64,000 nt of DNA from Anthoceros angustus (Eukaryota; Plantae; Anthocerotophyta): assembly GCA_010909165.1 (NCBI GenBank), contig VJWM01000116.1, positions 186,001 through 250,000 of the forward strand. The letters are read 5' to 3'. The notes under the pieces were generated by a model. It was not told where the DNA came from, made no database searches, and saw nothing but the letters and a program-made list of their open reading frames with translations. The position numbers and the translations under genes are program-made. This document shows, one piece after another, positions 3,044-63,331 of this stretch; the first letter of the stretch is position 1; the number at the start of each line of letters is the position of its first letter.

Positions 3044-3266
3044 TGGAAGACTCGTGGGCTGCTGAACAAGGAACTTCTCTACTGAGCTTTAAGATTCGAC
3101 ACAATTGAACTTACAAAGCCAGTCACAGCCGGCTCCAGCCTCAAATCCAGGCTACAGCAACGCTGGCACAGATTACCTTGCTCCTGTTTCCTGTACTGCC
3201 AGGTATCCGCTTAGCCAAGCTGATAACCAGATTGAATGTCTTCCAAGGCCAAATACAGAAAACAAC

Positions 3267-5984: not shown

Positions 5985-6994
5985 CAACGGTTGCGGTTGT
6001 CGCCGAATGGCTGCTCCTCTGGGCATGCCCGGCTGCATGGAAGGTCTCTCTGCTGGACAGACCAGCATGCAGTTGTTTGCAAGCCCAAAAGCTGGACCTG
6101 ATTGCCCAGCTGATTGCATTAGCAGGAGTTGGAAGAGAGAGATCCTTCACTGCGAATTTAGGCGAACAGCTTCTCTGTGCATCTGCTCGGCCTTCCGTGG
6201 ACTAGCTTGGAATACATTTCGTGCAATCTACGCACATCATTCCTCTTCAGTAGAAATTCTGGGGAGCCAACTTCATGACGCTCACTACACTTCTAGCCTC
6301 CAGTATCGTTTTGCAGCCTGATAGTCCTCCAGATATCTTCAGGGAGTAGGTACATGATAAGCTCCTGCATAAACGCATAAACTCTGCAAGAACTTTGAGA
6401 GGAAAAGAGGAAAGTCTCCAAACCTCCACAATTACCTACAAAGCTATTTTGTCCGATTCTTGGATGGAGAATAGTCTGTATCACACCAGCGAATACGTAG
6501 CCGGAAGAGGTCCCCAGCAGTATACTTGCTGATGGAGAGGTCGCCAGAACTGTAGGAAAGACAAAGCCTTCCTGTAAAAGCTTCAGGATATCGTGCCATG
6601 GTACCAGCAAAAGCTTCGATACGTTCTTTCCGACATATGCATGGGGCAAGTTGCAAGCCGCACCTCGTGGACCTGGACAAGCTGTCAAGCATGTAAGAAG
6701 AAAACAGCTGTAAAAAGGAGTTCGTGTCCAGACCACGGATCTTTGATTCCTCCTCCCAACCTGCGGCTGCGGCCGATGCATTACAGTCTGCAACGGAACA
6801 GTCGAAAGTGTGCCGGATCCCAGCAGTACCCTGGCAGTCGCAAACGCCTCAGCTGGTGGGTCAGCTGGGGGTAGTGCGGCCTCTGAAGAGCCGCCTGCTC
6901 CCTCCGTCCAAGGTGCGGGATCAGCACGGTCCCAACTCCCAAGTGGCTGAAGAGAGGTTCTGCCCTGGTGGGCTCAGCAGGCGAGTATTGGGGG

Positions 6995-7430
6995 ATGGCG
7001 GGAAGAGGAAAGCTGCTTCCTGTTGCGGAGGCCAATGGGCGGAGCGTGGAGGATTCTGGGCAACTGTTGCGACCTTCGGAGAGGTATCAGGTGACGGATG
7101 TCGAGCGGGATGAGATGGCAGCGATCCTGCATAAAGCAAGCCTCCGCCAGAGCTCATTGGTGCGGGATTCATTTTCCGTGAAGATAGCATTGCTCACTGT
7201 CCTGTATGCCCCGTTGTGTGTGTAGGGACTGGTACATAGGATGCTGGGATGTCGATAGGTGGCATTACTTGGCACTGCAGGGAGCGTCGGGGTCGGCAAT
7301 ACTTTGAAGGGAGACCTGCTAGAACTGTTTGGAGAGATCGGGACCTACGGTTTGCTCTGCAAGCTGGCTATTCATCGAAAGCCGAGCGGAGATGATGCAG
7401 AATGTGGAGGAGCGGGCCCACCCTGTAGGG
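6995..7430 (+). pseudogene. 5' fragment of a paralog of the NLR at 21067 (exon 1 plus start of the four-helix domain)
   Basis: MAGRGKLLPVAEANGRSVEDSGQLLRPSERY...MAAILHKA aligns with MADGTRLRPVAEENGRSVEDSRRPVPPSERY...MAEILDKA. LLELFGEIGTYGLLCKLA aligns with LLDLFGDIGTYGLVFKLA. After a frameshift it reads FIESRAEMMQNVEERA, then homology is lost. No NB-ARC follows. Confidence 0.8.
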
Positions 7431-8978
7431 CCAACAGAGGACTGTGTTGTTGTGTGTTCCACTTGCTGTCATGTCGCCATATCTGGAGTCTCTGATAGGG
7501 TGTGTCATCTCGGACAGGACAGGCACACAACATCCTATGAGAGATGTCCTACAGGACAGATCCTGCAGGTTTAATAGGACAGATTTTTTTAGTCTGATGA
7601 AGAACAGTGTGATTCTGCGCCACAAGAGGAGAAGCTAGCCCCAGGTATCTTAATTTCAAGTGGAGATGGGAAGTGACTTGCTATAATGAGGACAATTCGA
7701 TCACAGAAGAAGAATTTTATTTAAGTCCACTAAGGACGAATTTCCATCATGGGACTTGGTACTTAACAACTTGTGCCTAAGCTACTTGCACCAAGGGCAT
7801 CCACTCCCTTCAGGCACCCCATCTAAGCACCCCATCTAAGTATCAATCTAAGCTCAGGATGCTTAATCACTACGTTCTTATAAATATGTGTCCATTTGGA
7901 CACACATTCCAAGCTCCATCATCCTTGGCAATGGCACCCCCTCTTGGCTGATGCGCGGACTTCTTCAGACGATGGCAAGGACATGCTAAACAGGAGTGAA
8001 CTTCTATAAATGTGTCAGTACTCCAGCCAAACATTAAAAGCTTGCTGGCAAGAAGACTGCCTGCTTTGATGAGCTTTGGCAAGTTAGAACTCCCTGACAT
8101 TTGTATACTATTGCAGGTAGCAAGTTCCAAGTGGCCTTAGGGTTCTGGTTCTAAATGGGCTTACGGTTATGCTCCTCCATTTACTGTACACTCGTAGCGC
8201 CCTTGACCTCACGCTTCTTGCACACTCAGTAGCCCAGTCAATCTAAAGCCGATTTGCATTTTGATTTTGATTTGGGAGGGTGGGGTGCGCCAGGCGATGG
8301 AAATAGTGCAATACCAATGCAACGCTCGAGGAACCGTGGTAGCAAACAACAACATGACCACATGAGACTCCTCCCCAGGCATTAGACTAACATCATGTGG
8401 ATCAATAACCCACGCATGAGGTATAAAACTAATAGGAACAGATACTACACTTAATCTTAACCAAGAGGTCGAGGGAGGAGATGTACAAAGATAGTCTCTT
8501 CTCTCGCCGAGGCCTTTTGGCCAAGATGAAGTGGGTTATCGAAAGTAAACCTCTCCAATCTCAGGTCAAGTTGTAAATATCATAGAGGCATCACGGTCTG
8601 TTCCTCAAACGATATGGGATAATATGTTGGGGTTAGCGTTTCATCCGAAGGTAGCAGGTATCGTGGTCTCTACGTCCAAGGAACTCTATAACGGATGCAA
8701 TCGATGGCGTTTGAAATCACTCAGGATTACCAAGCTGTCTCGAGGTCTAATTAATTACAGGAGCATACTAATAGTGACGGATGGCCTGTGAAAGCTGCTT
8801 CATGCACTACTAGATTCCAAAGGGAAAGTTACTCTAGGTGGTACTCGATTGTGATGGTCACTATTTGCAATTATATAGCTGCTCATGCACTTGTTGTGGA
8901 ACTTAGAATAACCACGCTTGCATGGATTGTTAGTTAAGGTAAGTTTACCACCCAAGAAGCACTTCAATGAACAGCTAA

Positions 8979-12479: not shown

Positions 12480-14100
12480 TGGATTACATCTTCGCTTGTG
12501 GTGTGGAAGAAGCGTGTTTGTATGTGTGAAATTGGGAGCGTGAAACTTGGAAGGATGTGAAACTTGGAGCGTGTTTGGTAGCGGAAAAATATCGGGCGTT
12601 GGAGGCACACCGCGTCTGTTGCAGGAGGAGCGGGAAAAATGGCAAAACACCGTGAAAAGAGTTCTGAGGAACCGGATAAGTACATGCTCCTCGCTATAGG
12701 AATGGACGAGAAGAGGCGAGATTCCACACTTTGCGTTGGCCAAAGAATCTTGATGAGGACCGTGTGTATGCCGTAGTGGGTTGCATGATCCACAATTATC
12801 GTCTGTGCAAGAGTGTTTTGCACTATGCCAATTTGAGGAACGATGCGAATCGACAATCGGGGATTATTCAAGATGTTATTCTTAATTATAAAGGAGTGCT
12901 ACCCAAAGTGCTCTATTTGACTTGACAACACTTGCGGAAAACAAGAACCATTTGTTGTTTGCGTGTTTGAACATGCTAGTTGATATGGGAACTTTTCAAG
13001 GTGAAGGTTGGGTTCCTCCTTGTTGGGCACACTCACGACCAAATCGACCGATGTTCTCTTGCTTTTCCAAAAGCTTGAAGCACAAGGAGGCACACACTCT
13101 TCCCGCGTTGGCCGACATCTTGGTTCGTTCATGCATACACGCCTACACCGGAGATCAAAGTTTTGCGGAGGTCCGGACTTGTCATATGTATGGCCGATTA
13201 GACAAGCGATGGTCGCCAGCATATTCATCATCGGTGAGAAAATTGAACAACTTATCTTTCCGGCACGGTTTAAAATCACGGAGAAGACAAACGGGGTAGG
13301 TGGTGTGATGATAGGAGCAAGCAATATTCGACATCGATGTATTGGGAAAGCGAAGCCGGGTTGGAGTTTTTGAAATTTGTCCCTCCAACGACACCACTGC
13401 GGTTTGTCGGCCCTCGCTCGAGACAAGAAAGGGCGTCGGCGGGGTTATCTCCGACGGAGTGGCACATTTGAGGCGGATGCAGCCGGCTGCGGCCATATGT
13501 GGACGAGAATATGGATGGTGGGAAGCATTGGGTGGACCAAGAAGAAATCGCAATAATCGTGGAGAACAATATTGGGCTCGCACTAGAAGTGCCGTGGAAA
13601 TGGTTCTCTCGGGCGGAATCGGAAGAAAGCAGCAACCACTCCAAGTTCCGATGAAGCTATCCTAGAGGCGTTGCTAAGAGAACTCCCCAGCAGGATATGT
13701 ACTTGGGGCCTTACAGTTGGGAAGCGGGAAATAACGCGTTGCATGGAGATGTAAAAGACATAAAGGAAGGATGTTCATCGCAGACCTTGTACCAAATACG
13801 CATAATCGGCCTTCGGATTGGGAAAGTTAATCGGTGAGGTTGGATGTGGAAGAGCCTCATTTCACTGTTCACAGTGGGTGAGCACACAGATGCATATGAA
13901 GGCGGTCGTGGAAGAATATGTGATTCAGGACCATCCACTTGAGACATTTGGGATTGGAAGGAAAAAGGGTGGGAAGGCAAATTTCGAAGAATGTTCAAGA
14001 AGTCTTCATCAATAAAACGTCATCATATTATGGGTTCGGTTTGAATTCCGTAAACATCTCTATTCCATTGACAAAAAGCGATCGGGGATAAGTTGAATGA
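12480..14100 (+). mobile_element. Degenerate DDD-type DNA transposase, Sola-like / DUF7869-type
   Basis: Joining frames across single-base indels gives HREKSSEEPDKYMLLAI(D)GMD (about 12650-12710), LPKVLYL-x-LDNTC-x-ENKNHLLFACLNMLVDMG (12898-12990) and VKVGFLLVGHTHDQIDRMFSCFSK (13001-13070). These match the DGMD / LDN..ENKN / GHTHxxID.FS motif series I recall for this family. The superfamily label needs HMM confirmation. Confidence 0.65.
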
Positions 14101-16906
14101 ATTGCGGGGCTTCATCGAGCCACCCAAAGTGCAAGAGTAGCGAAGGCGGTGAGGACATCGGGCCCTTGGACATGGAAGGTGTCAATTCGGGAGATGAGTG
14201 AAAAGATGTATGAAGTGGAGGCAAACATCGGTGGACATCGGTGGACAAGAGGGTTTACTCTCTGACTGTCGAAGTGTGCTGACCGCCAAGTGTTAGGGTC
14301 AAAGTGGGGAGCTCGCGTTAGTGATAGGGAATGACCTGTTGGTGCTATCATTCGGTGATTGGAAGTTGAAGAAGTAGGAGTCACTTCCCCTGGCCGTAGG
14401 TTGCGATGTCGACATGGACAAATGGCGAGGCGGCCGGTGGGCGCCGCCATTTTCACCATCCTCTAGTAGCATGGAAACCGTTTTCCGCACCGATCTGTAT
14501 TGTACATTTTGTCGAGACTATATATAACCCATCCACGCGCATGCCTAAATCCTACATCGTGGAAACCCGATAGTTGGGCACGACCTTCTTGCCAAAAACA
14601 AGACTATGGGTTACGGGCGGGGTTCGGAAAGAAGCACCATTCTTTACCAATGATGATGGTGAAGATTGCGCAATGTCTTCAAAAGACCTTGTTTATTTAG
14701 GCATGCCTCATCAACCCGTTCCCTTTTAGTCCTTAGGGTACTTATGGTAAGCAAGCATGGGTCGTATTATGCCAAATTCGATGGCGAACTCGCTAACCCT
14801 TTGTGTGATGGAACCTTTGCTCGGGCGTCAATTTCATCCTTATCGACCCTTATTTTCAGGCCTTTTGGAGCGATGTTGCCCAAAGGAGCGGAATCGACCC
14901 ATCCCAAACCCCTTCCGACGATATTTGGATGAAAACCCCCAGATATATTAACCCCTTCCAAGATTATCACCACCGTGGTGGCTTGCTTTGCTTGCGGACG
15001 ATCCAGTTGTCATAGGGCACAAGTGAAAGCTATCTGATGTGACAGGAGAGCTATGTGGTCGGGACCACTCCCTTGAGGTTGAGGCTTTGGGAGTTGCATG
15101 CGGACCTGTTGTGGCGTTGTATTTCCAAGCCTCCGATTTTTTAAAGAGGTGTAGTGGAGAAGGACCTCGCTCGCCATGCTTTCGGTGAACAGGGGCATCG
15201 ATCGAGACATTACGGATGTATGTCTCTTGTATGGAAGCTTGCAAGGTGCGATCCACATTGTCGGATGTATTTACAGTGGTGGCTAAAGCAGATGCCTTCA
15301 CGTGGTGCCATAATCTCCGCTTATGTTAAGCTTACAACTCTATGATCATACATCTGCTATGCAAGTACGCATAATCGGCCTTCGGATTGGGAAAGTTAAT
15401 CGTGAGGTTGGATGTGGAAGAGCCTCATTTCGTTCATCGTACAGATCGAGCATGATGCATATGAAGGCGATACGTGGAAGAATATGTGATTCCCCATCCA
15501 CCGAGACAATTGGGATTGGAAGGAAAAAGGGTGGGAAGGCAAATTTCAAGAATGTTCAAGAAGTCTTCATCAATAAAACCGCTATCTTGTATTATGGGTT
15601 CGGTTTGAATTCGTAAACATCTCTATTCCATTGACAAAAAGCGATCGTGATAAGTTGAATGAATTGCGGGGCTTCATCGAGCCACCCAAAGTGCACAGAA
15701 GATAGTGAAAAGACGGTGAGGACATCGGGCCCTTGGACATGGAAGGTGTCAATTCGGGAGATGAGTGAAAAGATGTATGAAGTGGAGGCAAACAGGTGGA
15801 CATCGGTAGACAAGAGGGTTTACTCGACCGTCAAGTGTGCGACCGCCAAGTGTTAGGCTCAAAGTGGGAGCTCGTTAGTGATAGGGAATCACCGTTGGTG
15901 CTATCATTCGTGATCGGAAGTTGAAGAAGTTGGAGTCACCGGCCGTAGGTTGCGCGGCGACATGGACAAATGGCGGGCGGTGGGCGGCGCCCGCCATTTT
16001 CACCATCCTTAGTAGCATGGAAACCGCCCGCACTGTATTGTACATTTTGTTCGCATATATAACCCATCCGTGACGCATGCCTAAATCCTAAATCGTGGAA
16101 ACCTGAGCACGCCCGAGCCCTTCTTGCCAAAAACAAAAGACTATGGGTTCGACGACTGGAAAGAAGCACCATTCTTTACCAATGATGAGTGAAGATTGCC
16201 GCAATGTCTTCAAAAGACCTTGTTTATTTAGATCGGCCTCATCAACCCGTTCCCTTTTAGTCCTTCCGGTACTTATGGTAAGCAAGCATGGGTCGTATTA
16301 TGCCAAATTCGATGGCGAACTCGCTAACCCTTTGTGTGATGGAACCTTTGCTCGGGCGTCAATTTCATCCTTATCGACCCTTATTTTCAGGCCTTTTGGA
16401 GCGATGTTGCCCAAAGGAGCGGAATCGACCCATCCCAAACCCCTTCCGACGATATTTGGATGAAAACCCCATCAGATATTAACCCCTTCCAAGATTATCA
16501 CCACCGTGGTGGCTTGCTTTGCTTGCGGACGATCCAGTTGTCATAGGGCACAAGTGAAAGCTATCTGATGTGACAGGAGAGCTATGTGGTCGGGACCACT
16601 CCCTTGAGGTTGAGGCTTTGGGAGTTGCATGCGGACCTGTTGTGGCGTTGTATTTCCAAGCCTCCGATTTTTTAAAGAGGTGTAGTGGAGAAGGACCTCG
16701 CTCGCCATGCTTTCGGTGAACAGGGGCATCGATCGAGACATTACGGATGTATGTCTCTTGTATGGAAGCTTGCAAGGTGCGATCCACATTGTCGGATGTA
16801 TTTACGGTGGTGGCTAAAGCAGATGCCTTCACGTGGTGCCATAATCTCCGCTTATGTTAAGCTTACAACTCTATGATCATACATCTGCTATGCAAGTACG
16901 CATAAT
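13797..16906. repeat. Tandem duplication of a ~1.55-kb TE-derived unit (13797-15365 and 15366-16896)
   Basis: Near-identical ORFs recur at offset 1531 (14948/16479, 15010/16541, 15154/16685). The 10-mer TACGCATAAT marks all three boundaries (13797, 15366, 16897). The copies differ mostly by small indels; the offset drifts from 1569 to 1531. Confidence 0.9.
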
Positions 16907-17544: not shown

Positions 17545-19086
17545 TTAGGACCAAACACAAGACGATTTGGTAAACCCTAGTCGATTGTTATGAATATCAT
17601 ATTCGATAAAGAAATTCTGTTGTTGCAAATTTCCGAGTATGCTAAAACTTCCTATAGTACTGTCGATGATTGCAAGACAATATGTACTACTTCCATATTC
17701 ATAGAATAGGTTTTCTTTGGGAAGCTTCATTTCGACCTCAGAAACATTATCATTCCAATTTTGAAAGTGAAAACTCACGGTGGGAAACTGAGTTGAATAA
17801 AAAGTGTCTCTTGTGATATTATAGCATAATCTAAACTCGTCGTTGTCCACAACAGGTAAGTCTATTAACTCATCAAAGACTTCAGCTAAGACAAGAGCTG
17901 CCGGGAAAGCCAATTGTGTGAATGTGGTGCCGGAGTCAATTATTGTGCCAGTATAGTCAATGGTTGTAAGTTCAAATAAGGATGAGTAGATGTTCAATCG
18001 ACTTCCTCCTACGGAAATTCCTCTGAGGTTGATAAAATAATATGAAGGTTCCCAAGAGCCTAATAGAATTGGAGTGTAGAAAATATGATATTTAGATCCA
18101 TTCTGCCAATTATTTTTATCTCCAAATGATAAATAGCTAATAGCATTCTTTTGAGTCATTCTATCCGGAAAGCGCACTAATAGGACATAAATACCTCAGG
18201 TTAAAAAATAATAGTCACTAAAGAAAAATAAGATTTTAATACATCAAAAGTATCATCTTTCATTAAAAACAATTCTACCTGAACTTGACAAAATTTGGGG
18301 CTTTTGTGCGAGCAGCTAGTTGCATTCCAAGAGAATTTTTATCTCTACCTAAACCCAAAATACCCGTGTCCATATTTGGAGCTTCATGTGGACGACAATA
18401 GAAATTTGTCACACATCCAAATTGGATGCCTATAATTTTTTTATTATAATGCAATTCTTTTTCATTTATCACAGTCAAAGTGTCTATAGCAAGATATCCT
18501 TCAACTGAGGTTCCATCTCCATATTTATTTTAAAGGTTTGTTGTCTTCCATTGCCAAGCTTAAGTTGCTTATATGTACTTGACTTTAAAGGATTGAATGA
18601 ACCTTGATCATGTTCACAACCTCGACCTTCACATATTTCACATCGAATCCACAATTGATGACTGCCTGTATCTAAAATAAGTTGTGTATCTTGTGGTGGT
18701 GTTCCCATTTTAAGCTTGACATAGTATTCATCTTGCCAAAAGTTACTTGGAGATATAAGGGGGTTTTTTAAATTCAATTTCCTTGATTCGTTCTGCCTTG
18801 GATATTTTAAACTTACTTTTGTTGGGCCTTCGAAGAGACCTTCATGTCGTTTTGGAATGTAGTAATCTCTAATTAGAGTACTATTCAGAAAGTGTGCATG
18901 AAAGAGAGGAAAAGTATGTTCAGGATTCTCTCCCAAAATATCTTGTAAGGACGGTAGGATATTCTTAGTCTCAGTCATCAAGTAATTACAACTTGCAAAA
19001 CTTGAAAAAGTTCCCAAAAAGATGTACAACTGAATAAATATTTTCAGTATTATTTTAAAATTATATACAAATATAATATTATCCAT
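17545..19086 (-). CDS. Secreted A1-family aspartic protease (nepenthesin/CDR1-like, TAXi_N + TAXi_C), AT-rich, at least one apparent frameshift
   Basis: Hydrophobic N-terminus from ATG 19086, then YYVKLKMGTPPQ and LILDTGS (first catalytic Asp, about 18661-18684). Adding one A at about 18525 restores YGDGTSVEGYLAIDTLT. FGC and GILGLGR follow, then IIDSGTT (second Asp, 17926-17940) and ILGNLQQQNFFIEYD. A probable short intron lies near 18180-18280. Confidence 0.85.
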
Positions 19087-21066
19087 TTTGCGATGAAAGA
19101 TTGAAATCAAATGATGTCAGAAATACAATGTTGAAGTAGTGTTATCTTGTGAGATGCACAAATTTCAAATTGTCACCCAACAGTTTCCTTCTCTAAAATA
19201 AATTAAAAAAAGTCATAAGTTGGAACAGTCTTTAAGAAAAGGCTATCAAACATTTTTCACTTCTCACCATCTGGTGTACACATAAAACTTTGAAAGTTGA
19301 TATTATAAGTGGATGAGTTAACCTTTGAATGCCAATATTTTTCTAGTGAACATATTTTATATGAGATTGTGTAATCTATTTTAGAAGCTTTTCATATTTT
19401 TTTTGTATAAATAAACTTCCATAAAAGGATTGCCTAGTCCCAGAATGACAATCAAGCTAGCTGGAAACGAATGATTTGAAAATCCCTATTTAGATTCTCA
19501 AAATTTAGGGTTCTCCACATAGTTCTCCACAAAATTGGGGTTGTCCCTAGCATGATTCGTTTGTCCAAGCCGTGCGAAGTTCCTTGCTTCGCAATGAATA
19601 CCTGCACATGAAACTTTTGTGGAGGATTTTTTTGTATACTCGAATTTCCAAGCTTTTTAGAAAGACACTAAATTGATGAACTTATTTCAGTAGGTCCCTA
19701 TTCTTTTGTTCGTATAAATAAATTTCTATTCAAGTTTTGAATTAAGATGTAAATGAATTGGTTGGTTTCTTTTGCAGATGTGATTGTGACAGACCCTACT
19801 TCGGGACAGTATTTGTGAGCATATTATCATCAACTCTCCGGGTTGGGTGGCGGAGGGATGTAGAGTAGTGAAGGTTGGCAGGTACATCCATGCAGGAAGA
19901 CCACACATTGATTGCCCCTACCATCGAGACCTACAGGGCCATGCCAAAGATTTCTTCGGGTTCATTTGGCTGCCCAAAATGGGCAATTACGGCGACTCAG
20001 GGCTATTTGCCTTTTTTCGGGGTAGATGAATTTCCATTTTTTTCCTACGTAAAGTCTATGTTTTATTTTGTTCTTGTTGTAGTTAGATATTAGGATGGAA
20101 GTTCTAAAAAGACCGTGTTAACTCATACTTTTGCCGCTCGTTGAAGTAAGGTTTAGTCAGTCGTTTCAGTCATGATTGTCCCTCTTTCCGAGCAAAAGAG
20201 TTCTAAAGTAATGGAGACTTTATTAAAAAAAAGAGATCACCATCTACCCCGAACCTAGGGGACCACCCAGTAAGTAATGGGACATGAGAATTTGGATCTT
20301 TCTAAAGGCAGGCCCCGAGTCGAAGGCATTGCTTGTTGCTCTCTCCCTCCCTTCATTGTCGTAATTTCATTGACACTGTTAATTAATTGATTGAAGATTA
20401 TTTATCTTGTTTGAATTTTACCTTTACATTCGTCCATACCATTGTACCGCAATCTACGTAGTTATCATATTTCAATCCCATGAGGGAAATCCGTCCTTAG
20501 TGAACTTCAATAAACTTCTTCTTCTTCTTCCTCCCTCCCTTCCTTCCTTTCTTCAAACCTTCAAATCTTCAAACCGCGTTGATTTTGGTGACGTTGTGGT
20601 CCCAAGACTTCGTCGTGCTGCATGGTGGTAGGATTACTTTACTCACAGAGTCAGTGATCGGCTGTCCATTGTACAGGGTAGGGTGGTTCCTGGAAGGTGT
20701 GGGAGCTCGCGTGCCTCCTGCAGGCTGCTTTATCTGGTCCAATGGCAGCCGGATGTAGATACACGAGAGTCCAAAAGAGAAGAACGACGTCCCGTCAACA
20801 CCATGAAAGCACAGTCACGACTACGCCAAATCATGCTCGTCTTGTGAGTCTGGAGTAGCTAAGAAGCAAGCACATGGCTTGATTCGTATCTCAAGGCCGG
20901 GTCCCCCCCGTCTTTGATGCGTTGGTGCTTCCGCGAAGCTGCGACGGTGGGGGATGCGAATGCAGCCCAGTCTGCCATTGTACACTCACACTCGCCTCAG
21001 GTGGTGGGTGAGCTGGGCTGGTGCGGCCTCTGAGCTCTGGTGGGCTTAGTATGCGAGGATTGGGCC

Positions 21067-24000
21067 ATGGCGGACGGAACGAGGCTGCGTCCTGTTGCGG
21101 AGGAGAATGGGCGGAGTGTGGAGGATTCTCGGCGGCCGGTGCCTCCCTCCGAGAGGTATTGGGCGACGGCTGACGAGTGGGATAAGATGGCAGAGATCCT
21201 GGATAAAGCTGGCAACCTCCAGACCCCGAGCCTTGCGGTGGGTGACTCGACTTCGGGGTGTGGGTGATGGGTACGGTGGTAGGAAGGATGGTGGGATGCT
21301 GATGCTTGGCATTGCTAACATTGTTGGAACTTGGCACTGCACAGGGCTCGAATGAGGAAGGTTCGAGCAAGGGGGTGGGCGTTAGTGTGGAGGGGGTGAT
21401 GTCCGAGCTGCTGGATCTGTTTGGGGATATCGGGACCTACGGTTTGGTCTTCAAGCTGGCTGCATTCATCCGAAACCGAGTGGAGACGATGCAGGATGTG
21501 GAGGAGCGGAGCAAGCAGGTGGCAGAGCAGACTGAGTTCATTTGGAAGAGCTTCGAGAAGGTGGAGATACAGTTCACACTTTCCGATGTGTCCATCCTGG
21601 AGCAGGCGGCCGAGACCTTGTGTTTCTGTGCCGTTGTGTTGCAGAGGTTGCGCGTAAGGAGTTCGGGGTGAGTGAGTGGGAGTCTTCCCTGACGGTTCGG
21701 ATGGAATTAAGGGGTTTGTTGATGTCTGCTGCAGGGAATGAGCTGATGGATGGAACAACTGTGGTGTGGCAGGCCTTGTGCTTGCCTGCTCATCAAATTA
21801 TGCAGCTTCCTGTCTGCACCTGCGAATCAAGCGGCGTTGGTGACATCCGCAGAGAAGCTCAGGAGCTGGGAGAATCTGTCTCTTGCCCCACAGACTCGCC
21901 ATCCCGTTTCCGATCTGCCGGATCTTCAGTGGCCCCCGGCGGTCGGGATCGATGACCAGATTGATGAGGTGCTCGAGTTTCTGGGTCAGACTAACTCTGA
22001 CCAGGGCGTGTCGTGCGTGGTCTGCTTCCACGGGGTGAAGGGTGTGGGTAAGAGCCGGCTCATGTTCGAGGTGCAGAACAGGTTCCCAGCCAAGTCCATC
22101 ATCGACAAATTCTACACCATGGACTTCGCCTCAGCATCCGATCTCCAAAGCCTCCTGTACTTGCAACAGGGGCTCGTGGAGCATCTCCAGGGCATAGAAC
22201 GGCCACTGCACTGAGAAGTACGGATTCGGGCAGGACGACTATCAGGAGGTGCCTGGCTTTCCTGAAGGCGAAGAAGCAGCGGGTGCTGTTTGCCTTCGAC
22301 AACGTTGGGAAGGCGGAACACTTGACTTCCATCTTGCCACTGAACCTAGCTGAGAAGCTGCCCGCTGGGAGCTGCATTCTGGTGTCACTGGCCCACAACG
22401 ATCAGATTCTGAGAGCCATCGAACAGGTGTTTCCACGCAGCAGGACATGCCAGCACAAAACACACTCGGTGACTGCTCTGAAAGAAGAGGATGCCAAGAA
22501 GCTCCTCAGCCTGCACGCAGTCAACCTGCCGAAGGACGAGTCGGTGGTGGAAAAACTCGTTGCCCGCTGTGAAGGGCTCCCTTTGCTGCTCAAGGCCGTG
22601 GGTCAAGAGCAGTGGGCAGACTGGCAAGCTGTGCTGGACGCTCTGACCAAAGCTGAAGACGGTGCTCAGGTGCCTGATGAGCTTACCGGGGTGATGACGC
22701 ATCCCAACGCCGTGCCACCAGAAAAACCTTCACCCGCTGGCAGGTTAACAGATTATGTGCCATACTCTCTTGTGGAACCGATTGACAGCAAATTGGAGAA
22801 CGCGGCCCTGAACAAGCGCCTGGACAGCAAGTTGAAGGTTGTGTTCGGAGCCCTGGATGAAGAGCTGCAGAATGCGCTGAATGACATCCGAAGCTTGCTC
22901 GCTGGTTGGGACTGGAAGACAGTGGAGGCCATCCTTGGGACAGATCTTGATCATGGGAAGGACTTGATGAAGAAGCTGGCTGATCGGTCTCTCATATCCC
23001 CAAGGTGAGCAGGGGCCGAGACCTTGTGTTTCTGTGCCGTTGTGTTGCAGAGGTTGCGCGTCAGGAGTTCAGGGGGTGAGTGAGTGGGAGTCTTCCTGAC
23101 GGTTCGGATGGAATTAAGGGGTTTGTTGATGTCTGCTGCAGGGAATGAGCTGATGGATGGAACAACTGTGGTGTGGCAGGCCTTGTGCTTGCCTGCTCAT
23201 CAAATTATGCAGCTTCCTGTCTGCACCTGCGAATCAAGCGGCGTTGGTGACATCCGCAGAGAAGCTCAGGAGCTTTCGGGAGAATCTGTCTCTTGCCCTA
23301 CAGACTCGCCATCCCGTTTCCGATCTGCCGGATCTTCAGTGGCCCCCGGCGGTCGGGATCGATGACCAGATTGATGAGGTGCTCGAGTTTCTGGGTCAGA
23401 CTAACTCTGACCAGGGCGTGTCGTGCGTGGTCTGCTTCCACGGGGTGAAGGGTGTGGGTAAGAGCCGGCTCATGTTCGAGGTGCAGAACAGGTTCCCAGC
23501 CAAGTCCATCATCGACAAATTCTACACCATGGACTTCGCCTCAGCATCCGATCTCCAAAGCCTCCTGTACTTGCAACAGGGGCTCGTGGAGCATCTCCAG
23601 GGCATAGGCACGGCCACTGCACTGAGAAGTACGGATTCGGGCAGGACGACTATCAGGAGGTGCCTGGCTTTCCTGAAGGCGAAGAAGCAGCGGGTGCTGT
23701 TTGCCTTCGACAACGTTGGGAAGGCGGAACACTTGACTTCCATCTTGCCACTGAACCTAGCTGAGAAGCTGCCCGCTGGGAGCTGCATTCTGGTGTCACT
23801 GGCCCACAACGATCAGATTCTGAGAGCCATCGAACAGGTGTTTCCACGCAGCAGGACATGCCAGCACAAAACACACTCGGTGACTGCTCTGAAAGAAGAG
23901 GATGCCAAGAAGCTCCTCAGCCTGCACGCACCTGCCGAAGGACGAGTCGGTGGTGGAAAACTCGTTGCCCGCTGTGAAGGGCTCCCTTTGCTGCTCAAGG

Positions 24001-25904
24001 CCGTGGGTCAAGAGCAGTGGGCAGACTGGCAAGCTGTGCTGGACGCTCTGACCAAAGCTGAAGACGGTGCTCAGGTGCCTGATGAGCTTACCGGGGTGAT
24101 GACGCATCCCAACGCCGTGCCACCAGAAAAACCTTCACCCGCTGGCAGGTTAACAGATTATGCCATACTCTCTTGTGGAACCGATTGACAGCAAATTGGA
24201 GAACGCGGCCCTGAACAAGCGCCTGGACAGCAAGTTGAAGGTTGTGTTCGGAGCCCTGGATGAAGAGCTGCAGAATGCGCTGAATGACATCCGAAGCTTG
24301 CTCGCTGGTTGGGACTGGAAGACAGTGGAGGCCATCCTTGGGACAGATCTTGATCATGGGAAGGACTTGATGAAGAAGCTGGCTGATCGGTCTCTCATAT
24401 CCCCCAAGGTGAGCAAGGGGGGGCGCTTGGCTCCGGTAGCCAACCTTACCAGGTACTCGGGGCCAGGTCCTTGGAAGACTAATGTGGTGGCTGTGGATGA
24501 GCGCGTCCTGCAGCCGTCCAATACCGTGGCCAGTCTGGTGGAGCTGGATCATCCTGAGGCTGTCACGCTGGACAGAATCCAGGGCGTGAAGTATCTGGTG
24601 GTGCACAACAGTTCACTGGACGCGACGTGGTCCCGTCACCTTGCTGATTTGAAGTTCTTGTACTGGAGTGTGAGCAGAGTTGGTGCGTCGACATCCTTCA
24701 CATTCCCTTTCCAGGGACCTCATGTTCTACCACAGTTGAAACTGCTGATCATTTATGGCAATCTCAATGTCCATCAGTTCACGGTGGGTTCCTCCTTCCT
24801 CCTCCTTCACATCATGGAGTCCATGGCAGGTTCTGAGCTGATTCTTACGGACTTGCTGTTGATGTCGTTCAGATACCTTCAGAGCTGCCCCGGCTCATCC
24901 TTGTCAACTGTGGTGCAACACAAGAGCTACCGGAGGCCATGTTCGTCTCAAGGAAGCTGGAAGAGCTCCGCCTGAGAGACTGTCGTAACCTGGCACGCCT
25001 CCGTCTGCCTCAAAGGAACAATCACCTGCAAACCCTCTGCCTGGACAGATGCCCCGCTCTGAAAACCTTGCCCAAAGCCATTTCCGGTTTGAGAGCTCTG
25101 CGAACCCTGGAGCTGCTCTCATGCGACGGCTTGGAGGAGCTGGAAGCAGCGGGCGTAGGGCGTCTGGAGAATCTACGAGCTCTCTCTGTCGTCGGCTGCA
25201 ACAAGCTTACGGCACTGCCTGACGACCTCGGAAATGTGTCCACACTCGAGTCCTTGAACCTATCCTTCTGCAGCAACCTCGGGGAGGTGCTGCAGATCGG
25301 TGATGGTTTGGGACAGCTGGAAGATCTCGACCTGACAGGTTGCTCATCGATCCGCAAGCTCTCACCGGACATCAAGATGCTCAAATCTCTGAGTAGACTG
25401 AGTCTGGTGGCTTGCTCCAACCTGGTGTCTCTCCCGGACGAGATCGGGGAGTTGCGGAACTTGCAGGACCTGGAGATGGGTTTTTGCATCCGAGTGCGAA
25501 ACCTGCCAGTGAGTCTCCTCAACCTGGCGTCTCTCCGCAGGCTGACGCTCACCAGGTGTTCCAGACTGAAGGAACTGCCGGAAGGTCTGGACGCGTTGAG
25601 CAGCCTGGAGTACCTCAATCTTCTGGGCTGCCAGGCACTGGACGTGTCCAAGTATTCGGAGGTGATCCAAAAGCTGCGGAACAACACGGCCGTGGTGCAC
25701 GCAGAGCCATCCGACTTGCGGACCCTTTACACCGGCCAGCAGCAGGGGAGCAGAACCGGATCGGCGGCCTACTGGTCCAACCCGACTGCTAACGTGTCGA
25801 GCCCTGTCGACAGAACGAGATTCCTCTCTGCTCCTTCTGCGTCTAGTCGTCCCATGGAACCTAGGACTGCGGGGGATAGACACAGCAGTATCGATGAAGA
25901 ATAG
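21067..25904 (+). CDS. Atypical NLR immune receptor: MLKL/Cbl-N-like four-helix N-terminus, degenerate NB-ARC (present twice because of a tandem duplication), C-terminal LRRs
   Basis: P-loop GVKGVGKS (22032 and 23442), Walker B VLFAFDNV, RNBS-B-like GSCILVSL, CEGLPLLLKAVG, WHD-like KLADRSLI, and about ten LxxLxLxxCxxLxxLP repeats (24939-25700). Inferred introns 21238-21344 (with CTAAC branch point), 21668-21772 and 24784-24872 restore the frame. Confidence 0.85.
21608..24415. repeat. Tandem duplication of a ~1.4-kb internal NLR segment (21608-23013 and 23014-24415)
   Basis: The sequence from GGCCGAGACCTTGTG to CCCAAGGTGAGCA occurs twice (offset about 1406). An imperfect GAGCA(G/A)GG microhomology marks the boundaries. 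The copies differ by complementary 1-5 nt indels. Confidence 0.9.
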
Positions 25905-25921: not shown

Positions 25922-28473
25922 TTACAAGGCAACTTTGCCTCGTATCCAAATGATCACCACACCTTCGCAGTCGGAGGTTGCAAGTAGGTTCTCTCCGTGG
26001 TTCCAAGCAACACCCACAACAGGAACGCTGTGCCCCTGAGCAGTAAAGAATGGACAGGATTTCAGCACAGTCCAGAGGATGATGTTGCAGGATAGAAGGA
26101 CGCTACGGAGCAGAAACCTGCAGCTTGTTGACGCATGGGGCCTTGGGCCGGGTCAGATCGTAGAACCCCACGGTGCCCTCCTCGCTCCCAGACACTGTCA
26201 CGGAGATCACAGGTGTCAGTGGCATGGAAGAGAAGGGAGGTGCTGAAGCGAGAGGGGCGGGGGTTGCTTCTCGGGAACCTATGAACTCGCCCCTCTCCAA
26301 TGACAGGAGTGGGCAGAAAGACGTCTTAATGCTTCTTGCCCGAGGGCCCAGGTGGAGGGAGAAGATCAGGAGCAGGGTGCCCTTCAAGGTCAGGGAGACA
26401 CTGTCACAAATCAAGCCTTGGTTGTGTTAAGGAGGATGGCATGTATCATGATGGGAGGCAGACGTTTGCGGAGAGAGCATCCAACCTGAAGAATCTCATG
26501 CTTCCATCACGATTGGAGGTGAGCAGTACAGGCTTGCCGGCGAGGTGTGAGAAGGTCTTGAATTGAACAGTTGTTGTTGCTGATTTGTGCCGCAGGCCAG
26601 CTCCATTTCGGTGAGCATGGGCCAGTGCAGCTGTGCGTTTCTCCACCGTAATGCTGTGAATTGTACCCTTCCAGAACACGATATCCTCTTCAGCGATGCT
26701 TCAAATGAGGAAAAGATTAGGACAGCTCGTCCATGCAGGTAGCAAGGTACCTGAGAGTCGCCAGCAAAAATGATGTTGCCAGTGCTATCAGTGTCCAGCG
26801 CTGTTATGTTGTTATCTACAGAAAGCTTGTGCAACACCCGGCCTGTGCTGAAATTGAACACCTGTGCGGTCACATGCATAGGAATTCAGAAGTCAGGGGC
26901 CGGCCACAAATGGTGTGGCGAAGCTTACTGTACACTGATGTGCAAATCACAGACTTACTGAGACGTTCTTACTTGAGTTGCCCACGAGGAGGAGGTTGTT
27001 ATTCACCTGCGTTAACACCACTCAGGAGAGATGAGAAGCTCGCGAAGATGGCTGAACGTTAATGTGATGGGCACTAAACAGAGTCAAGGACTTACAGGAT
27101 GAAACCGTATACAGAGCTGCGCACTCTTTTCGTATATGATCCGCACACATTGTCCCCCCTTGACGTCCCAGATTCTTACACTCTTGTCCACAGACGAGGA
27201 GCATATGTACCGATCATTCAACGACCAATCCAAATCTGCAACAATGGGAAAAGAAGGGGTTTGATAATAAGGATAGACACACTAAAACTATGCAGGAACA
27301 AACCCAGGCCACTGTGATAACTAGGCAGAGGGCTACAAACTATGCGGAACCGCAACAGTTGCAAACCAAAGTCATGCATAAATTGCAGGTAAAAGGGGCT
27401 GAATGTACCTGTGATTTCTTTGGTATGCCCATTGAGCTTGTGAAGAATGTGAGGAGGGTCGACCACTGTACAAACAGCCAGACTACCATCTGCTGCACCG
27501 TAAGCCAGCAGAGTCGAGCTGATGTGTGCAAATCGTACCACATTCACTGGACAGGGACATGGGACAAATGTTAAACCAAACCTAAATAAATGACAGGCAC
27601 TGCATGCATGTTCCTACTTGCATCAACTACTTGCTCAAATCATAGAGAAACAAACAACCTGAAGCCTTGGTTTCGTCAAACACGTGATGCATCCCGGCGA
27701 ATGAATAACCAGGTTCAGTGACAGCAGATCGTGGGTACAGTGACAAGCCAGTTGCACTAGACTCAAAGCTACCACGTGACACAAAGCTCGACGTCCTGCT
27801 AAGCCCATCCTGAGGAAGTGCACCATATGCTCAATAGTGAGAAGGCAAGGCGGAGGTTGCTTGAAACGCAACTGCATGGCTCCTGGACGGACACGACTCC
27901 ATCAAGCAAGCAAAGTTTTGACCTTAGGTGACCTCATATTGCTGCTGATGCTGCGTGGAGACCAAGAAAGCTGGAACGACTGCTGTCCATATCTGCTAGC
28001 AGAAGCATCAGACAACAGTGTCGCAATCCACAGCAGCTGTCACCACGTTTCTGCATGCTCAGCACCGGAGGCAACACTCACCTGTCTATCGGTAGAATGT
28101 CAGACACACTTGCTCTGCTCGACATCTCAGACACACTTGCCCTGCTCGACATCTCACATCGCTTGAGATACAGTAGGAACTCCCGGTATGCAACATAGCC
28201 CTTACCATTGCACTGCCATGTCTGCGCAACAGACTCCATACTCTCAACTCGACCACTTCTGTGCTAGAAGGAAATGCATATCCACACACAAGAGAGTGAC
28301 GACTTCACCCACAATCTTACATAGCGCTGCAGCCTGCCAGCGGACCGCTTCTTCTGCTCCAGGATGAACCTCCGAATGGCCGAATGAGCCGGGTCCTGGT
28401 CCAGTGCGACGGGAGCTGCAGGTGCTCCCGGAAGCTCGGCCGGATCAACTCCAGGTTTCACCTCGGCTTCCAT
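25922..28473 (-). CDS. WDR13: WD40-repeat protein, WDR13-like (multi-exon)
   Basis: N-terminus MEAEVKPGVD...DQDPAHSAIRRFILEQK, then VRFAHISSTLLAYGAADGSL, DLDWSLNDRYICSSSVDKSVRIWD, QVFNFSTGR, SFCPLLSLERGEFI and GSEEGTVGFYDLTRPKAPCVNKLQ. The last exon reads GHSVPVVGVAWNHGENLLATSDCEGVVIIW, stop at 25922-25924. Canonical short GT-AG introns. Confidence 0.85.
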
Positions 28474-36269: not shown

Positions 36270-36669
36270 TACTGCTCTGTTCTCTTCTCTTCTCTATGTA
36301 ACAGCTCCCTTGCAACGCGCTGTGCATGTGATCTGATCGTACGCAGAGGAGAGGAAGATTCCGATCCAGATCCGCAGCGACAGGAAGACCATGGTCGCTA
36401 AAACGCGCTTGAAACGGGCATTTCGTTTAACGAAAACGGGGTTGCGGAGCTTGTGGTTGTGGTTACAGGGACGAAGGGAGCGGCTTCTGTGCGCCGCAGA
36501 AAATTGCGTAATTCTGTGAGCGAGGCGAGGGAAGCGAGCTTATTCCGTGCGCCAATGGCAGCTCAGATGGAGTGGCACGGCAGCTAGAAGGGGGGGTTCC
36601 GGAGACTGGGCCTGGCCTCGTCACCGGCCGCAGTGCGATATAGAGGAGCTCCATGTGCAGGCCGCAGCC

Positions 36670-38904
36670 ATGGCTGCCTCCGCGTCTCCTGCTCTGCTGA
36701 ATGCGCACGCTCTGGGCTGGGCTGCGAGTAATGGCGTGGTGGCGCGGCCAGCCCAGCCGGATTTCGTGCGCTGGAAGGGCCGGGGGAGGCTGCCTCGGCT
36801 GCGGCTGCGAATGGAGGCCCAGATGACCGCAACCGAGGAGGCGCAGGCCCCGGAGGAGGAGCGGGCTCGCAGCAATGGCGCGGCTAACGGGGCTGCGAAT
36901 GCCGTGCAGGTGCGGGGGGAGAGCAATGGGGCAGCCCTGCTAAACGGGAGAGGGAGGGGGAGCGGGTACGGGAACGGGAACGGGGCGGCGAACGGGGTGG
37001 TGCTGGAGGCGGAGGTGGTGGATGCGGTGGAGGGGAACAAGGTGGAGGCCATCGGGCAGGAGGATCCATGGTTCAAGAAGGCCGGGAGCGGGGCCAGGGT
37101 GTCGGTGGTGGCTGGGGGGCGGTGGAATAAATTCAAGACGTATTCTACGGTGCAGCGGACGCTGGAGATCTGGGGGTTCGTGTTCTCCTTTATCTTCAAG
37201 GCGTGGCTGAACAACCGGAAGTTCATGTACCGCGGGGGAATGACGGAGGAGAAGAAGAAGGCCAAGAGGAAGGTGCTGGCGAAGTGGTTGAAGGAGGGGC
37301 TGTTGAGGCTGGGCCCGACGTTTATCAAGATCGGGCAGCAGTTCTCTACCCGGGTGGATATCCTGGCTCCAGAGTATGTGGAGCAGTTGGCGGAGCTGCA
37401 GGACCAGGTGCCGCCGTTTGAGTCTGCCACGGCCGTCAAAATTGTGGAGGAGGAGCTGGGTAAGCCGGTGGAGGAGGTGTTTGAGAGGTTCGATCGGGAT
37501 CCCATCGCGGCGGCCAGTTTGGGGCAGGTGCACCGGGCGAGGCTGAATGGGGAGGAAGTGGTGATCAAGGTGCAGCGCCCGGGGCTGAAGGAGCTCTTCG
37601 ACATCGATCTTAAGAACCTGCGGGTGATTGCGGAGAATTTGCAGAAGCTGGACCCCAAGTCGGATGGTGCTAAGAGGGACTGGGTGGCTATTTATGATGA
37701 ATGCGCTAATGTGCTGTACGAGGAGATCAATTACTGCACGGAGGCAGCCAATTCGGAGCTGTTCGCCAAGAATTTCAAGGACTTGGAGTATGTGAAGGTG
37801 CCCAAGGTGTATTGGGAACTTACCACTCCGCAGGTGCTGACTATGGAGTATGTTCCCGGGATCAAGATCAATAGGATAGAGGCTCTGGATCAGCTGGGAG
37901 TGGACAGGCAGAAGCTGGCCAGGTATGCAGTGGAGTCTTATTTGGAACAGATTCTGCGGCACGGCTTCTTCCACGCCGACCCACATCCTGGGAATATCGC
38001 TGTGGACGATGCCAACGGCGGGAGGTTGATCTTCTACGACTTCGGGATGATGGGGAGCATCAGCTCCAACATCAGAGAGGGGTTGCTCGAGGCGTTCTAC
38101 GGGGTGTACGAGAAGGACCCCAACAAGGTGCTGGCTGCCATGGTGCAGATGGGCGTGCTGGTGCCCACTGGGGACATGACTGCCATCCGCCGGACAGCCG
38201 TCTTCTTCCTCAACAGCTTTGAGGAGCGTCTGGCTGCGCAGAGGTTGGAGAAGGAGCAGGCAACCGCCGAGTTGGGCTTCAAGAAGCCCCTCACGAGGGA
38301 GGAGGCGGTGGAGAAGAAGAAGCTGAGGCTTGCTGCCATCGGGGAGGATCTGTTGTCCATCGCCGTGGACCAGCCGTTCCGTTTCCCGGCCACCTTCACC
38401 TTCGTGGTGCGTGCCTTCTCTGTGCTGGACGGCATCGGCAAGGGCCTGGACCCGCGCTTCGACATCACAGAGATCGCCAAGCCTTACGCGCTAGAGCTTC
38501 TGCAGTTCCGGGAGGTGGGCATCAGCGTGTTCTTCAAGGAGGTGAAGAAGGGGTGGGAGAGGCAGGCCCGCGCCGTTGCCAATCTTGTCCGCCAGCCGGA
38601 GCGGGTGGAGAAGCTGGCAGAAGTCATCCAGCGGCTGGAGCAAGGTGATCTGAAGCTGCGGGTACGCACGCTCGAATCGGAGCGTGCCTTCAAGCGGGTG
38701 GCAGCAGTGCAGCAGGCCACAGGTCAGGCCATTCTGGCTGCAACCTGCCTCAACCTGGCCACCATGCTCTACCTTCATAGTGTCAGGGTTCCAGCCATAG
38801 CCGGCTTCAGCGCCAGTGCCCTGCTGGGCCTCCAGGTCCTTGTGGGCCTGTTCAAGATAAGGAGACTGGACAATCAAGAGAAGCTCGTGACCGGCACTAC
38901 CTAG
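36670..38904 (+). CDS. ABC1K8: Chloroplast ABC1 atypical kinase ABC1K8/OSA1-like, intronless CDS
   Basis: One uninterrupted ORF with [67 protein letters not shown] and FYDFGMMG. The Ala/Arg-rich transit-peptide-like start is ATG 36670. Confidence 0.9.
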
Positions 38905-62600: not shown

Positions 62601-63331
62601 CACACTGCTGCTCCCTACTCCTGCTTACTTCCATTGAACTCCTCTGCCCATCCATGCAGGCCCTCCGCGTCCTGGACGTCAGCCACAACCGTCTGGGCGG
62701 AATCTTCCCCGACTTCATCGCCACCCTGCGGGCCCTGGAGTACTTGGACGTGTCTCACAACACCTTCGCAGGCCCGCTCCCGGTGGCCAGATTCAACGCC
62801 TTCCCAGCTATACAAAACGCCACCCAGGACCAAGGCTCCTCATTTGGGCTAGGAGCTGTGTCTCTCTACCTGTACCAAAACGTGGTACTGCTGATTGTAC
62901 AGCCCACCCTCGATTTCTCAGGTACGCAACTCCACAACTTCCGGCATCTTCTCCTTCTCCACCCACCGCCACTCACCGTCTCATGCCTTCCTTGTACAGG
63001 AAACCTCTTTACCGGCGACATTTCCCCCAACATCGGCTCCCTCCGGCACCTCACCTACTTCAATATCTCCAGAAACCGAGTACAAGGCATCATCCCCGAC
63101 TCCCTGGCGAGAACCAGCGCATTGCAGGTTTTGGACGTGTCCAGGAACCATCTGACGGGCAGAATTCCCTTCAACCTCACCCACCTCAACTTCCTGCGTC
63201 TGGTCGACTTCTCCTACAACAACCTCAGCGGGCCCATCCCTCAATCCCCGATCTGGAGCAAATTCCCCGCCTCCAGCTTCACAGGAAACCATCTGTGCGG
63301 TCCCCCTATCTCCGACAGTTGTCTCGCCTGA
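59642..63331 (+). CDS. Secreted extracellular LRR protein with receptor-like-protein architecture but no transmembrane segment
   Basis: Signal peptide (LLLLLLAVLGFLQLALG), LRRNT_2 cap (DRDALLGFK...W...CCRWAGVRC) and many plant-type LxxLxLSxNxLxGxIP repeats over about 10 exons. A non-LRR island precedes four terminal LRRs, then the C-cap FPASSFTGNHLCGPP and a stop at 63331. Confidence 0.85.

Follow-up and report, generated by a model that had tools for sequence, protein, structure and literature searches.

Gene organisation and transcript support

The locus at 21067-25904 (+) of the window, the 64,000-nucleotide stretch of DNA analysed here, is a real, transcribed NLR-type gene with four exons, whose product of ~1045 aa comprises a 57-aa leader, a helical N-domain, an NB-ARC and ~11 LRRs. 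Exon 1 (21067..21237) encodes the N-terminal leader, 57 codons counted from the ATG, and is separated from exon 2 (21345..21667) by intron 1 (21238..21344), which is 107 nt long and has GT..AG borders. The joining of 21237 to 21345 is found, with 0 mismatches, in one X1 RNA-like contig, thus confirming the ~57-aa first exon that the earlier note on this DNA had proposed. Exon 2 encodes the first three helices of the N-domain four-helix bundle; it can be aligned to P0001, P0002 and P0008 and matches the N-domain of the NLR P0067 (BLASTP E 1e-8). Exon 3, given in the coordinates of the second of two duplicated copies (23180..24783), encodes the last N-domain helix (23211-23306), the NB-ARC and the winged helix. 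The acceptor of intron 2 defined by the RNA-like contigs lies at 21773 in copy A and at 23180 in copy B, and adds the residues GPCACLLIKLC upstream of the 'SFLSAP...' with which the exon had previously been started. Intron 3 (24784..24872; 89 nt, GT..AG) sits within an apparently open frame, and its joint is present in X1 and X3 contigs. Exon 4 (24873..25904), which is matched by X1 contigs with 0-3 mismatches, encodes ~11 LRR units built on LxxLxLxxC as well as a tail rich in Ser and Pro, and ends with the stop codon.

The GT..AG joints of all three introns (3/3) are found in RNA-like contigs, some of them identical to the window sequence. The exon 3-4 junction is bridged by contigs that match the window with 0-3 mismatches. 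In a related organism the exon 2-3 and exon 3-4 joints are identical, the exon 1-2 joint being found in X1 only, and 7 of the 10 listed differences from the window are synonymous. X1 also contains a second transcript type, ~3% divergent from the window, so that part of the RNA support may derive from a paralogue or another strain. One X1 contig shows an unexplained 23-nt break at 22747-22771, across the site of a 2-nt indel.

A degenerate relic of a paralogue's exons 1-2 was observed at 6968..7600 (+). By tblastn it is 57% identical to exon 1 and 59% identical to part of exon 2; its ORFs are broken and it has no NB-ARC downstream.

Tandem duplication and frameshifts in the assembly

As assembled, the gene contains a near-identical 1.4-kb tandem duplication (21608-23001 and 23014-24404; 98.5% identity), which TRF missed because its period exceeds 500. 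Copy A (21608..23001, +) carries the tail of exon 2, intron 2 (21668-21772) and the greater part of the NB-ARC exon, and copy B (23014..24404, +) carries the corresponding intron at 23076-23179, followed by the exon that starts at 23180. The duplication junction (23002..23013, +) displays a 7-nt microhomology, GAGCAGG. Eight small indels and 3 substitutions distinguish the two copies. Relative to copy B, copy A lacks 2 nt after 21664, 3 nt after 21867, 1 nt after 22198 and 1 nt after 22997; relative to copy A, copy B lacks 1 nt after 23094 (within the intron), 5 nt after 23929, 1 nt after 23956 and 2 nt after 24160. In the assembly the frame is broken in both copies, at sites that differ between them; thus the continuous protein described earlier mixes pieces of copy A and copy B. 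The gene model in that description was right in placing a gene at this locus and missed the duplication, the frameshifts and the third intron.

At all six indel sites in coding exons (6/6) the RNA-like contigs were placed on the undeleted copy, from which we infer an intact mRNA frame. Copy A is devoid of placed RNA-like contigs at 21805-22317 and 22831-23001, and contigs matching the stretch of the copy B deletions were placed on copy A, at 22489-22830. The 5 nt missing from copy B are present as AGTTA in both X1 and X2, and adding the 8 nt that copy B lacks brings exon 3 to 1612 nt, after which, by arithmetic, the frame closes on exon 4. No RNA-like contig was seen across the duplication junction, where X1 depth is 0 in both flanking bins and X2 depth is 0 in the left bin (22831-23001). 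The DNA contigs of X2 lie 2-5% off the window with many gaps and, as a result, cannot settle the duplication. The excess of indels over substitutions, with several indels in homopolymer or dinucleotide runs, is a signature of consensus error and not of mutation. The frame breaks thus look like errors of the assembly, or are at any rate absent from the mRNA, and the duplication is probably an assembly artefact as well.

A pseudogene, with a genuine duplication, genuine frameshifts and RNA-like contigs that originate in another strain or in a close paralogue, would agree with the broken frames of both copies and with the junction microhomology, which is typical of real duplications. Other real-looking duplications occur in the window (13793-16906, 92%; 1-998 = 26289-27286, 98%), and the divergent second transcript type of X1 and the relic of the gene's 5' end at ~7 kb point in the same direction. 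The consensus-error signature, the contigs that span exons 1-2 and 3-4 with so few mismatches, their constant placement on the undeleted copy and the lack of a junction contig argue against it, making a pseudogene unlikely. As a practical warning, local duplications and small deletions in this assembly break real genes.

The N-terminal four-helix bundle

Modelling supports the assignment of the N-domain, as the earlier note had anticipated, to the MLKL/Cbl-N type of four-helix bundle. The domain of the window protein is split by an intron, and the N-domain of the closest relative, at 34% identity (P0001:1-215), was therefore modelled in its place with AF2, giving a moderately confident model (pLDDT 66). 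Its four helices, at residues 61-79, 85-111, 113-144 and 160-189, have pLDDT values of 70-86. The model superposes on the Cbl TKBD (6xar residues 52-176) with Z 9.6, on MLKL with Z 9.4 (rmsd 2.6 across 100 residues) and on the NRG1.1 CC-R with Z 8.8, values to be read in the light of Z scores below ~13 being common among helical bundles and generic designed bundles scoring similarly. In a Foldseek comparison of the N-domain with the PDB, none of the matches reached E <= 0.001; MLKL 2msv ranked 11th (E 0.62, prob 0.94) and NRG1.1 13th, and a shape search of the Atlas reached TM <= 0.48, its most telling match being a fungal 'N-terminal domain' cluster (TM 0.45).

Sequence profiles give a tentative link to MLKL. 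A profile including the heads of related NLRs matches the MLKL N-terminal domain with E 2e-5, over positions 27-144 and with the whole domain in register; the family-only profile gives E 0.07. The clusters nearest to exon 2 by ESM Atlas features carry MLKL_N. The MLKL N-terminal bundle (human and mouse; PDB 4btf, 2msv, 6ux8) has the same four-helix topology, and the last helix conserves the pattern 'F..A....L......L', where the weak Pfam MLKL_N match also falls (PF22215; E 0.14, 12 bits against a cut-off of 27, last helix only). The domains differ in context, since that of the window protein precedes an NB-ARC-LRR and that of MLKL a pseudokinase. On exon 2 and the N-domain every Pfam family stays below its threshold; RPW8 (PF05659) has no match at E <= 10, and Cbl-N (PF02262) has no sequence match, its likeness being structural only.

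With Cbl matching as well as MLKL, designed bundles scoring alike and the Pfam families all under their cut-offs, the protein might instead be a conserved, low-copy STAND scaffold of non-immune or non-lytic function, whose bundle, like that of Cbl, would only mediate protein interactions. Sensor NLRs evolve fast, in contrast to this family, which has few members and keeps its collinearity between hornwort and liverworts, and the neighbouring genes are housekeeping genes and do not form an NLR cluster. This reading is nevertheless quite unlikely, because the profile matches MLKL specifically, the same N-domain is found on canonical MHD-bearing NLRs such as P0067, and the best solved matches of the NB-ARC profile are the helpers NRG1.1, ADR1 and ADR1-L2, which bear MLKL-like CC-R heads (weak matches, E 0.0045-0.1). 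For an NLR-type receptor with such a head, a role of the N-domain as membrane executioner may be proposed.

NB-ARC motifs and LRR domain

The NB-ARC is recognised by Pfam PF00931 at 23157-24185 (E 1.6e-10; 41 bits against a cut-off of 23.5), and a model of the family's NB-ARC matches WRR4A, Roq1, RPP1, Sr35, CED-4 and Apaf-1 with E 1e-7 to 1e-6; no PDB entry was recovered by single-sequence phmmer with the NB-ARC. All the motif strings quoted in the earlier note are present in the window. The P-loop GVKGVGKS (23442-23465, +) keeps its Lys and Ser, and Walker B (FAFDNV, 23697-23717, +) keeps its Asp. The FDN of Walker B had been counted as a loss, and a dead Walker B was rejected since DN is the norm in related MHD-bearing NLRs. 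RNBS-B (ILVSLAH, 23784-23807, +) is devoid of the sensor-I Arg, having VSLAH at this site, and a family-specific insertion separates GLPL (23973-23996, +) from the winged helix. The string LNDIRSL lies at 24280-24300 (+), and VAVDERV (24487-24507, +) presents VDE at the MHD position, without the His. Thus, both residues of the ADP-lock, the sensor-I Arg of the RNBS-B 'TTR' and the MHD His, are missing in the window protein, and the family alignment bears out both absences as well as the insertion. The LRR domain matches Pfam LRR_14 (PF23598; E 2e-18), together with PF25019 and PF23247.

Relatives in liverworts

Mapa_006722 and Mapa_006723 of Marchantia paleacea and Mp2g17050 (MARPO_0109s0046) of M. 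polymorpha are full-length, collinear relatives of 1054-1107 aa, with the same order of leader, four-helix N-domain, NB-ARC and LRR and with 33-35% identity to the window protein over the NB-ARC piece. Their comparable N-terminal leader aligns with that of exon 1, and the earlier view of this exon as 'extra' is not supported. All three share with the window protein the GKSR P-loop, the Walker-B DN, the SC[VI][IL]VS RNBS-B, the PWKT motif, the insertion after GLPL and the loss of the MHD His. The insertion itself differs in sequence, being Pro-rich in the window protein and charged and helical in Marchantia. Homologue searches with the P0008 N-domain recovered P0008 itself only, those with the NB-ARC piece of copy A nothing within its length range, and those with the P0067 N-domain no match.

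The MHD His is missing in all four family members (VDE in the window protein; VPD, PPE and DPE in Marchantia) and the sensor-I Arg in three of the four (VSLAH in the window protein; VSIQG and VSVEG in Marchantia), Mp2g17050 retaining, unlike the window protein, an Arg at RNBS-B (VSMR). The alignment indicates that the atypical nucleotide switch is a conserved family trait and not decay. The switch had been described as 'eroded', with a check of the FDN/no-MHD pattern in orthologues proposed; both states are common to the three Marchantia proteins in spite of their low identity, and a decaying allele is rejected on the same pattern.

The recurrent losses, low or absent Pfam NB-ARC scores for the Marchantia members and the NLRtracker label of a liverwort member, 'degenerate NLR (PLOOP)(LRR)' (PMC11218826), would also suit a pseudo-ATPase, the alternative raised in the earlier note, acting as a sensor or decoy that does not cycle nucleotide and signals only via a partner NLR. 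This is very unlikely: all members (4/4) retain the P-loop GxxGxGKS and the Walker-B Asp unchanged across a very deep split, which would be unexpected if nucleotide binding were dispensable, and the window holds no head-to-head partner gene. We favour an NLR-type receptor, which would still engage nucleotide.

Relation to known NLRs

The gene had been put forward as an undescribed system. Mp2g17050 is already catalogued as a "degenerate NLR" by Chia et al. 2024 (PMC11218826), and Cbl-N-type (CC-Cbl-N) and RPW8-type (CC-R) NLRs of non-flowering plants have been described (PMC11218826). The family forms a subfamily, so far uncharacterised, within a known kind of NLR, and its standing as an undescribed system is not supported. 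Cbl-N-type and CC-R NLRs and the Arabidopsis helpers ADR1 and NRG1 likewise place an MLKL/HeLo-type four-helix head before the NB-ARC-LRR. The window protein differs from canonical Cbl-N-type and CC-R members, which keep GKT(T), the TTR-type Arg and the (M/Q)HD histidine, and has no Pfam RPW8 or Cbl-N match. P0067, a Logan transcript protein (SRR33208242) whose N-domain is homologous to that of the window protein, and the fern and gymnosperm NLRs P0006, P0018 and P0068 share with the window family the Walker-B DN, 'LLP..L...LP..S', GWDW and 'TRYS..PWK'. In contrast to that family, these four proteins keep GKTT, the RNBS-B Arg and MHD/VHD and are without the post-GLPL insertion; they represent the canonical state from which the window family departs.

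Proposed mode of action

The locus is likely to encode an expressed, four-exon NLR-type receptor of ~1045 aa belonging to a small, old lineage shared with liverworts, with the frameshifts, and probably the duplication, introduced by the assembly. RNL and CC-type NLRs and MLKL oligomerise and expose a four-helix bundle upon activation. In the window protein the intact P-loop would still bind nucleotide, the ADP-locked 'off' state would rely on a restraint different from the MHD contact, and activation would lead to oligomerisation and exposure of the four-helix bundle. Models of NLR activation depend on an ADP-lock formed by the MHD and sensor-I residues, and mutation of these residues in flowering-plant NLRs usually results in autoactivity. 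It is conceivable, if somewhat speculative, that a bryophyte-wide NLR lineage has functioned over hundreds of millions of years while lacking the MHD histidine and, mostly, the sensor-I arginine, its MLKL-type head being restrained either by a partner or by the family-specific insertion that separates ARC1 from the winged helix; such a lineage might be an early NLR of helper-like character, in parallel to ADR1/NRG1. As a low-copy family that has kept the P-loop and an MLKL-like head, with the lock residues absent since before the hornwort/liverwort split, it would offer a natural test of alternative ways to hold an NLR off. The family is experimentally tractable since Marchantia polymorpha has one orthologue-like gene, Mp2g17050.

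Gene structure and transcripts

The NLR-type gene at 21067-25904 of the plus strand encodes an NB-ARC (E 1.6e-10) and an LRR_14 domain (E 2e-18) in Pfam, and every motif string quoted in the earlier note was found at its position. The continuous protein proposed there does not hold as a single frame, as its pieces had been taken unmarked from both copies of a tandem duplication; that duplication had been overlooked, as had the frameshifts and one intron. A 1.4-kb block, which begins with the final 60 nt of exon 2, includes intron 2 and stops where the winged-helix region ends, is present as copy A (21608-23001) and copy B (23014-24404), with 98.5% identity, 3 mismatches and 18 gap positions by self-BLAST. 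Besides three substitutions, eight small indels separate the copies. Missing from copy A are 2 nt after 21664, 3 nt after 21867 and single nucleotides after 22198 and 22997; missing from copy B are single nucleotides after 23094 (within the intron) and 23956, 5 nt after 23929 and 2 nt after 24160. With these indels, several of them in homopolymer or dinucleotide runs, the frame is broken in both copies. A pseudogene at this locus is a less likely rival reading.

Contigs of four sequencing runs were placed on the window: X1, RNA-like by its spliced joints; X2, DNA-like and with the same sample label; and X3 and X22, from a related organism B. The X1 contigs define three plus-strand introns, 21238-21344, 21668 to 23179 and 24784-24872, all confirmed as GT..AG on the window sequence, and the second and third joints are also present in X3. 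Thus the 57-codon first exon described in the earlier note is real, intron 2 divides the N-domain, and the apparent ORF 24160-24975 holds an intron. Intron 2 would measure 105 nt in a single copy, with its acceptor at 21772 (copy A) or 23179 (copy B). By arithmetic from joints and indels, counting the eight nucleotides missing from copy B gives an exon 3 of 1612 nt and a frame of ~1045 codons that opens with the ATG at 21067 and closes with the stop at 25904.

X1 contigs fall on copy B at 23173-23856, the region of copy A deletions, on copy A at about 22480-22830, the region of copy B deletions, and again on copy B at 24202-24421, where copy A is short of one C. The five nucleotides missing from copy B are present as AGTTA in the X1 contig at 22522, and X2 has the identical letters inserted at 23929. 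Judged from contig placement, the simplest reading is an mRNA with a single NB-ARC and without the deletions. If this is right, the frameshifts would be consensus errors, and the duplication is most simply read as an artefact or else as removed by splicing. The junction is unbridged, since X1 has no contigs over 22831-23172 and X2 none left of 23002. A 23-nt break at 22747-22771 in one X1 contig is unexplained.

Two X1 transcript types cover the gene (21633-25412), one identical to the window and the other ~3% different. The divergent type has variants in common with X2 and organism B; over 23376-23605 it differs at 13 sites, of which nine change an amino acid. Its source is a paralogue, a second strain or a mixed sample. 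X2 itself is 2-5% different from the window with many gaps, and therefore represents another genotype or noisy data.

Relatives

All searches used single-exon pieces of the gene or database relatives. With the 335-aa exon-3 piece as query, an exhaustive HMMER search across 1.84 billion representatives yielded only 60 proteins at E <= 1e-3. The top three, each full-length and collinear with the window gene over its whole span from the leader to the C-terminus, are Mapa_006722 of Marchantia paleacea (34% identity), the adjoining gene Mapa_006723 (33%) and Mp2g17050 of M. polymorpha (35%). Mp2g17050 is listed as 'degenerate NLR (PLOOP)(LRR)', its N-domain unannotated, in Supplementary Data Set 1 of Chia et al. 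2024 (PMC11218826); a text search of a literature library found no mention of it in the running text of the papers there. According to the same study, non-flowering plants are enriched in Cbl-N-type four-helix NLRs, and its tables contain Marchantia (CblN)(NBARC)(LRR) genes. The window gene is assigned to an uncharacterised, conserved subfamily of a receptor kind already known. Its nearest 'canonical' cousin is P0067, a 1026-aa NLR encoded at 325-3405 of Logan contig L001 (SRR33208242), which has the same N-domain type but keeps canonical GKTT, TSR, GLPL and MHD.

Nucleotide switch

The family (window gene and three Marchantia relatives) was aligned with P0067 (a Logan transcript), the fern proteins P0006 and P0018 and the gymnosperm proteins P0068, P0070 and P0028. 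The P-loop is GxxGxGKSR in all four family members, in contrast to GKTT in the next-nearest NLRs (GKTI in P0028). RNBS-B reads SC[VI][IL]VS without the Arg in three of the four (VSMR in Mp2g17050), against TSR, TCR, SSR or TTR. GLPL is present throughout; it is followed, in the family only, by a 30-60-aa insertion conserved in position and not in sequence, modelled by AF2 as two long helices in the Marchantia protein. The MHD position is occupied by VDE in the window gene and by VPD, PPE and DPE in Marchantia, whereas the next-nearest NLRs have MHD or VHD.

The Walker B motif is hhhhDN in both sets, so the FDN that the earlier note counted as a loss is none. Nor is the switch 'eroded', as had been suggested: the same unusual state is found across the family. 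Canonical motifs in orthologues, by which the earlier note would have counted itself refuted, are not what the Marchantia relatives show. On these alignments, an old lineage has conserved the unusual switch, and the decay of a single allele is rejected. That the P-loop and the Walker-B Asp are invariant speaks for a continuing importance of nucleotide binding in the family, the rival being a pseudo-ATPase sensor. In the AF2 model of the family NB-ARC, pLDDT is 65-92 across the nucleotide-binding domain and the first helical domain; with E values of 1e-7 to 1e-6 the model matches WRR4A, Roq1, RPP1, Sr35, ZAR1, CED-4 and Apaf-1. By sequence, the family NB-ARC profile has its best matches among solved structures in the helper NLRs NRG1.1, ADR1 and ADR1-L2, though weakly (E 0.0045-0.1).

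N-terminal domain and proposed mechanism

Pfam gave no significant match to the N-domain, its sole hint being MLKL_N on the last helix (E 0.14). BLASTP shows exon 2 and the P0067 N-domain to be homologous (E 1e-8). When the profile combines the family with these related NLR heads, it aligns in register with the full length of the MLKL N-terminal domain of human and mouse (E 2e-5); the family-only profile finds the same register at E 0.07. An ESM Atlas feature search places exon 2 beside MLKL_N, MCAfunc and RPW8 clusters (score 0.90, a lead only).

Since an intron splits the window domain, residues 1-215 of the closest relative, P0001, were folded instead, with the exon-2 piece as an alignment row. 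In the AF2 model (mean pLDDT 66; helices 70-86), three short leader helices precede a bundle of four helices at 61-189. Foldseek found no significant match in the PDB. An independent structure search retrieved the Cbl TKBD four-helix domain (Z 9.6), MLKL (Z 9.4 and 8.6), NRG1.1 CC-R (Z 8.8), MLA13 CC (Z 7.8) and Rx CC (Z 7.7), although designed bundles reach the same level and Z below ~13 is common for helical bundles. Fold, insufficient alone, and sequence profile jointly support a putative MLKL/HeLo-type head. The four-helix head proposed in the earlier note is supported, unlike its reading of the switch as eroded.

By analogy with RNL/CC-type NLRs and MLKL, P-loop-dependent oligomerisation would expose the four-helix executioner head; a non-lytic scaffold is the rival for the product. 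The 'off' state presumably could not depend on an MHD-ADP contact, and restraint may come from the insertion, the LRR or a partner. A helper-like role would fit better than that of a fast-evolving sensor, as the family is low-copy and deeply conserved.

Surroundings

The gene lies outside any NLR cluster, among ordinary nuclear plant genes at 3570-4811, 17545-19110 (-), 36547-38904, 40349-43300 (-), 49311-53468 (-) and 59117-63331; the neighbours include a PPR protein, a TAXi-type aspartyl protease, an ABC1 kinase, katanin p80, a CHD3-type remodeller and LRR receptor-like protein(s). Exons 1-2 of a paralogue survive as a degenerate, frameshifted relic at 6968-7600 (+), with 57% amino-acid identity to exon 1 and 59% to part of exon 2, and no NB-ARC or LRR behind it. 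A second tandem duplication, 13793-15375 / 15362-16906 (~1.55 kb, 92% identity, 56 mismatches, 72 gap positions), looks older and real.

The end of a WD40-repeat ORF at 25922-26068 (-) lies 18 nt away from the NLR stop codon, and the 3' ends of these two convergent genes probably overlap. An X1 contig at 25872-26038 runs on into letters matching the sequence from about 26112, which suggests an intron in the WD40 gene. A dispersed duplicate, 1-998 / 26289-27286 (98% identity, 20 mismatches, zero gaps), differs by substitutions only, unlike the NLR duplication; its second copy falls among minus-strand ORFs that follow closely downstream of the NLR. The ORF closest to the NLR, at 25925-26068, is WD40-like and lies outside the duplicate.
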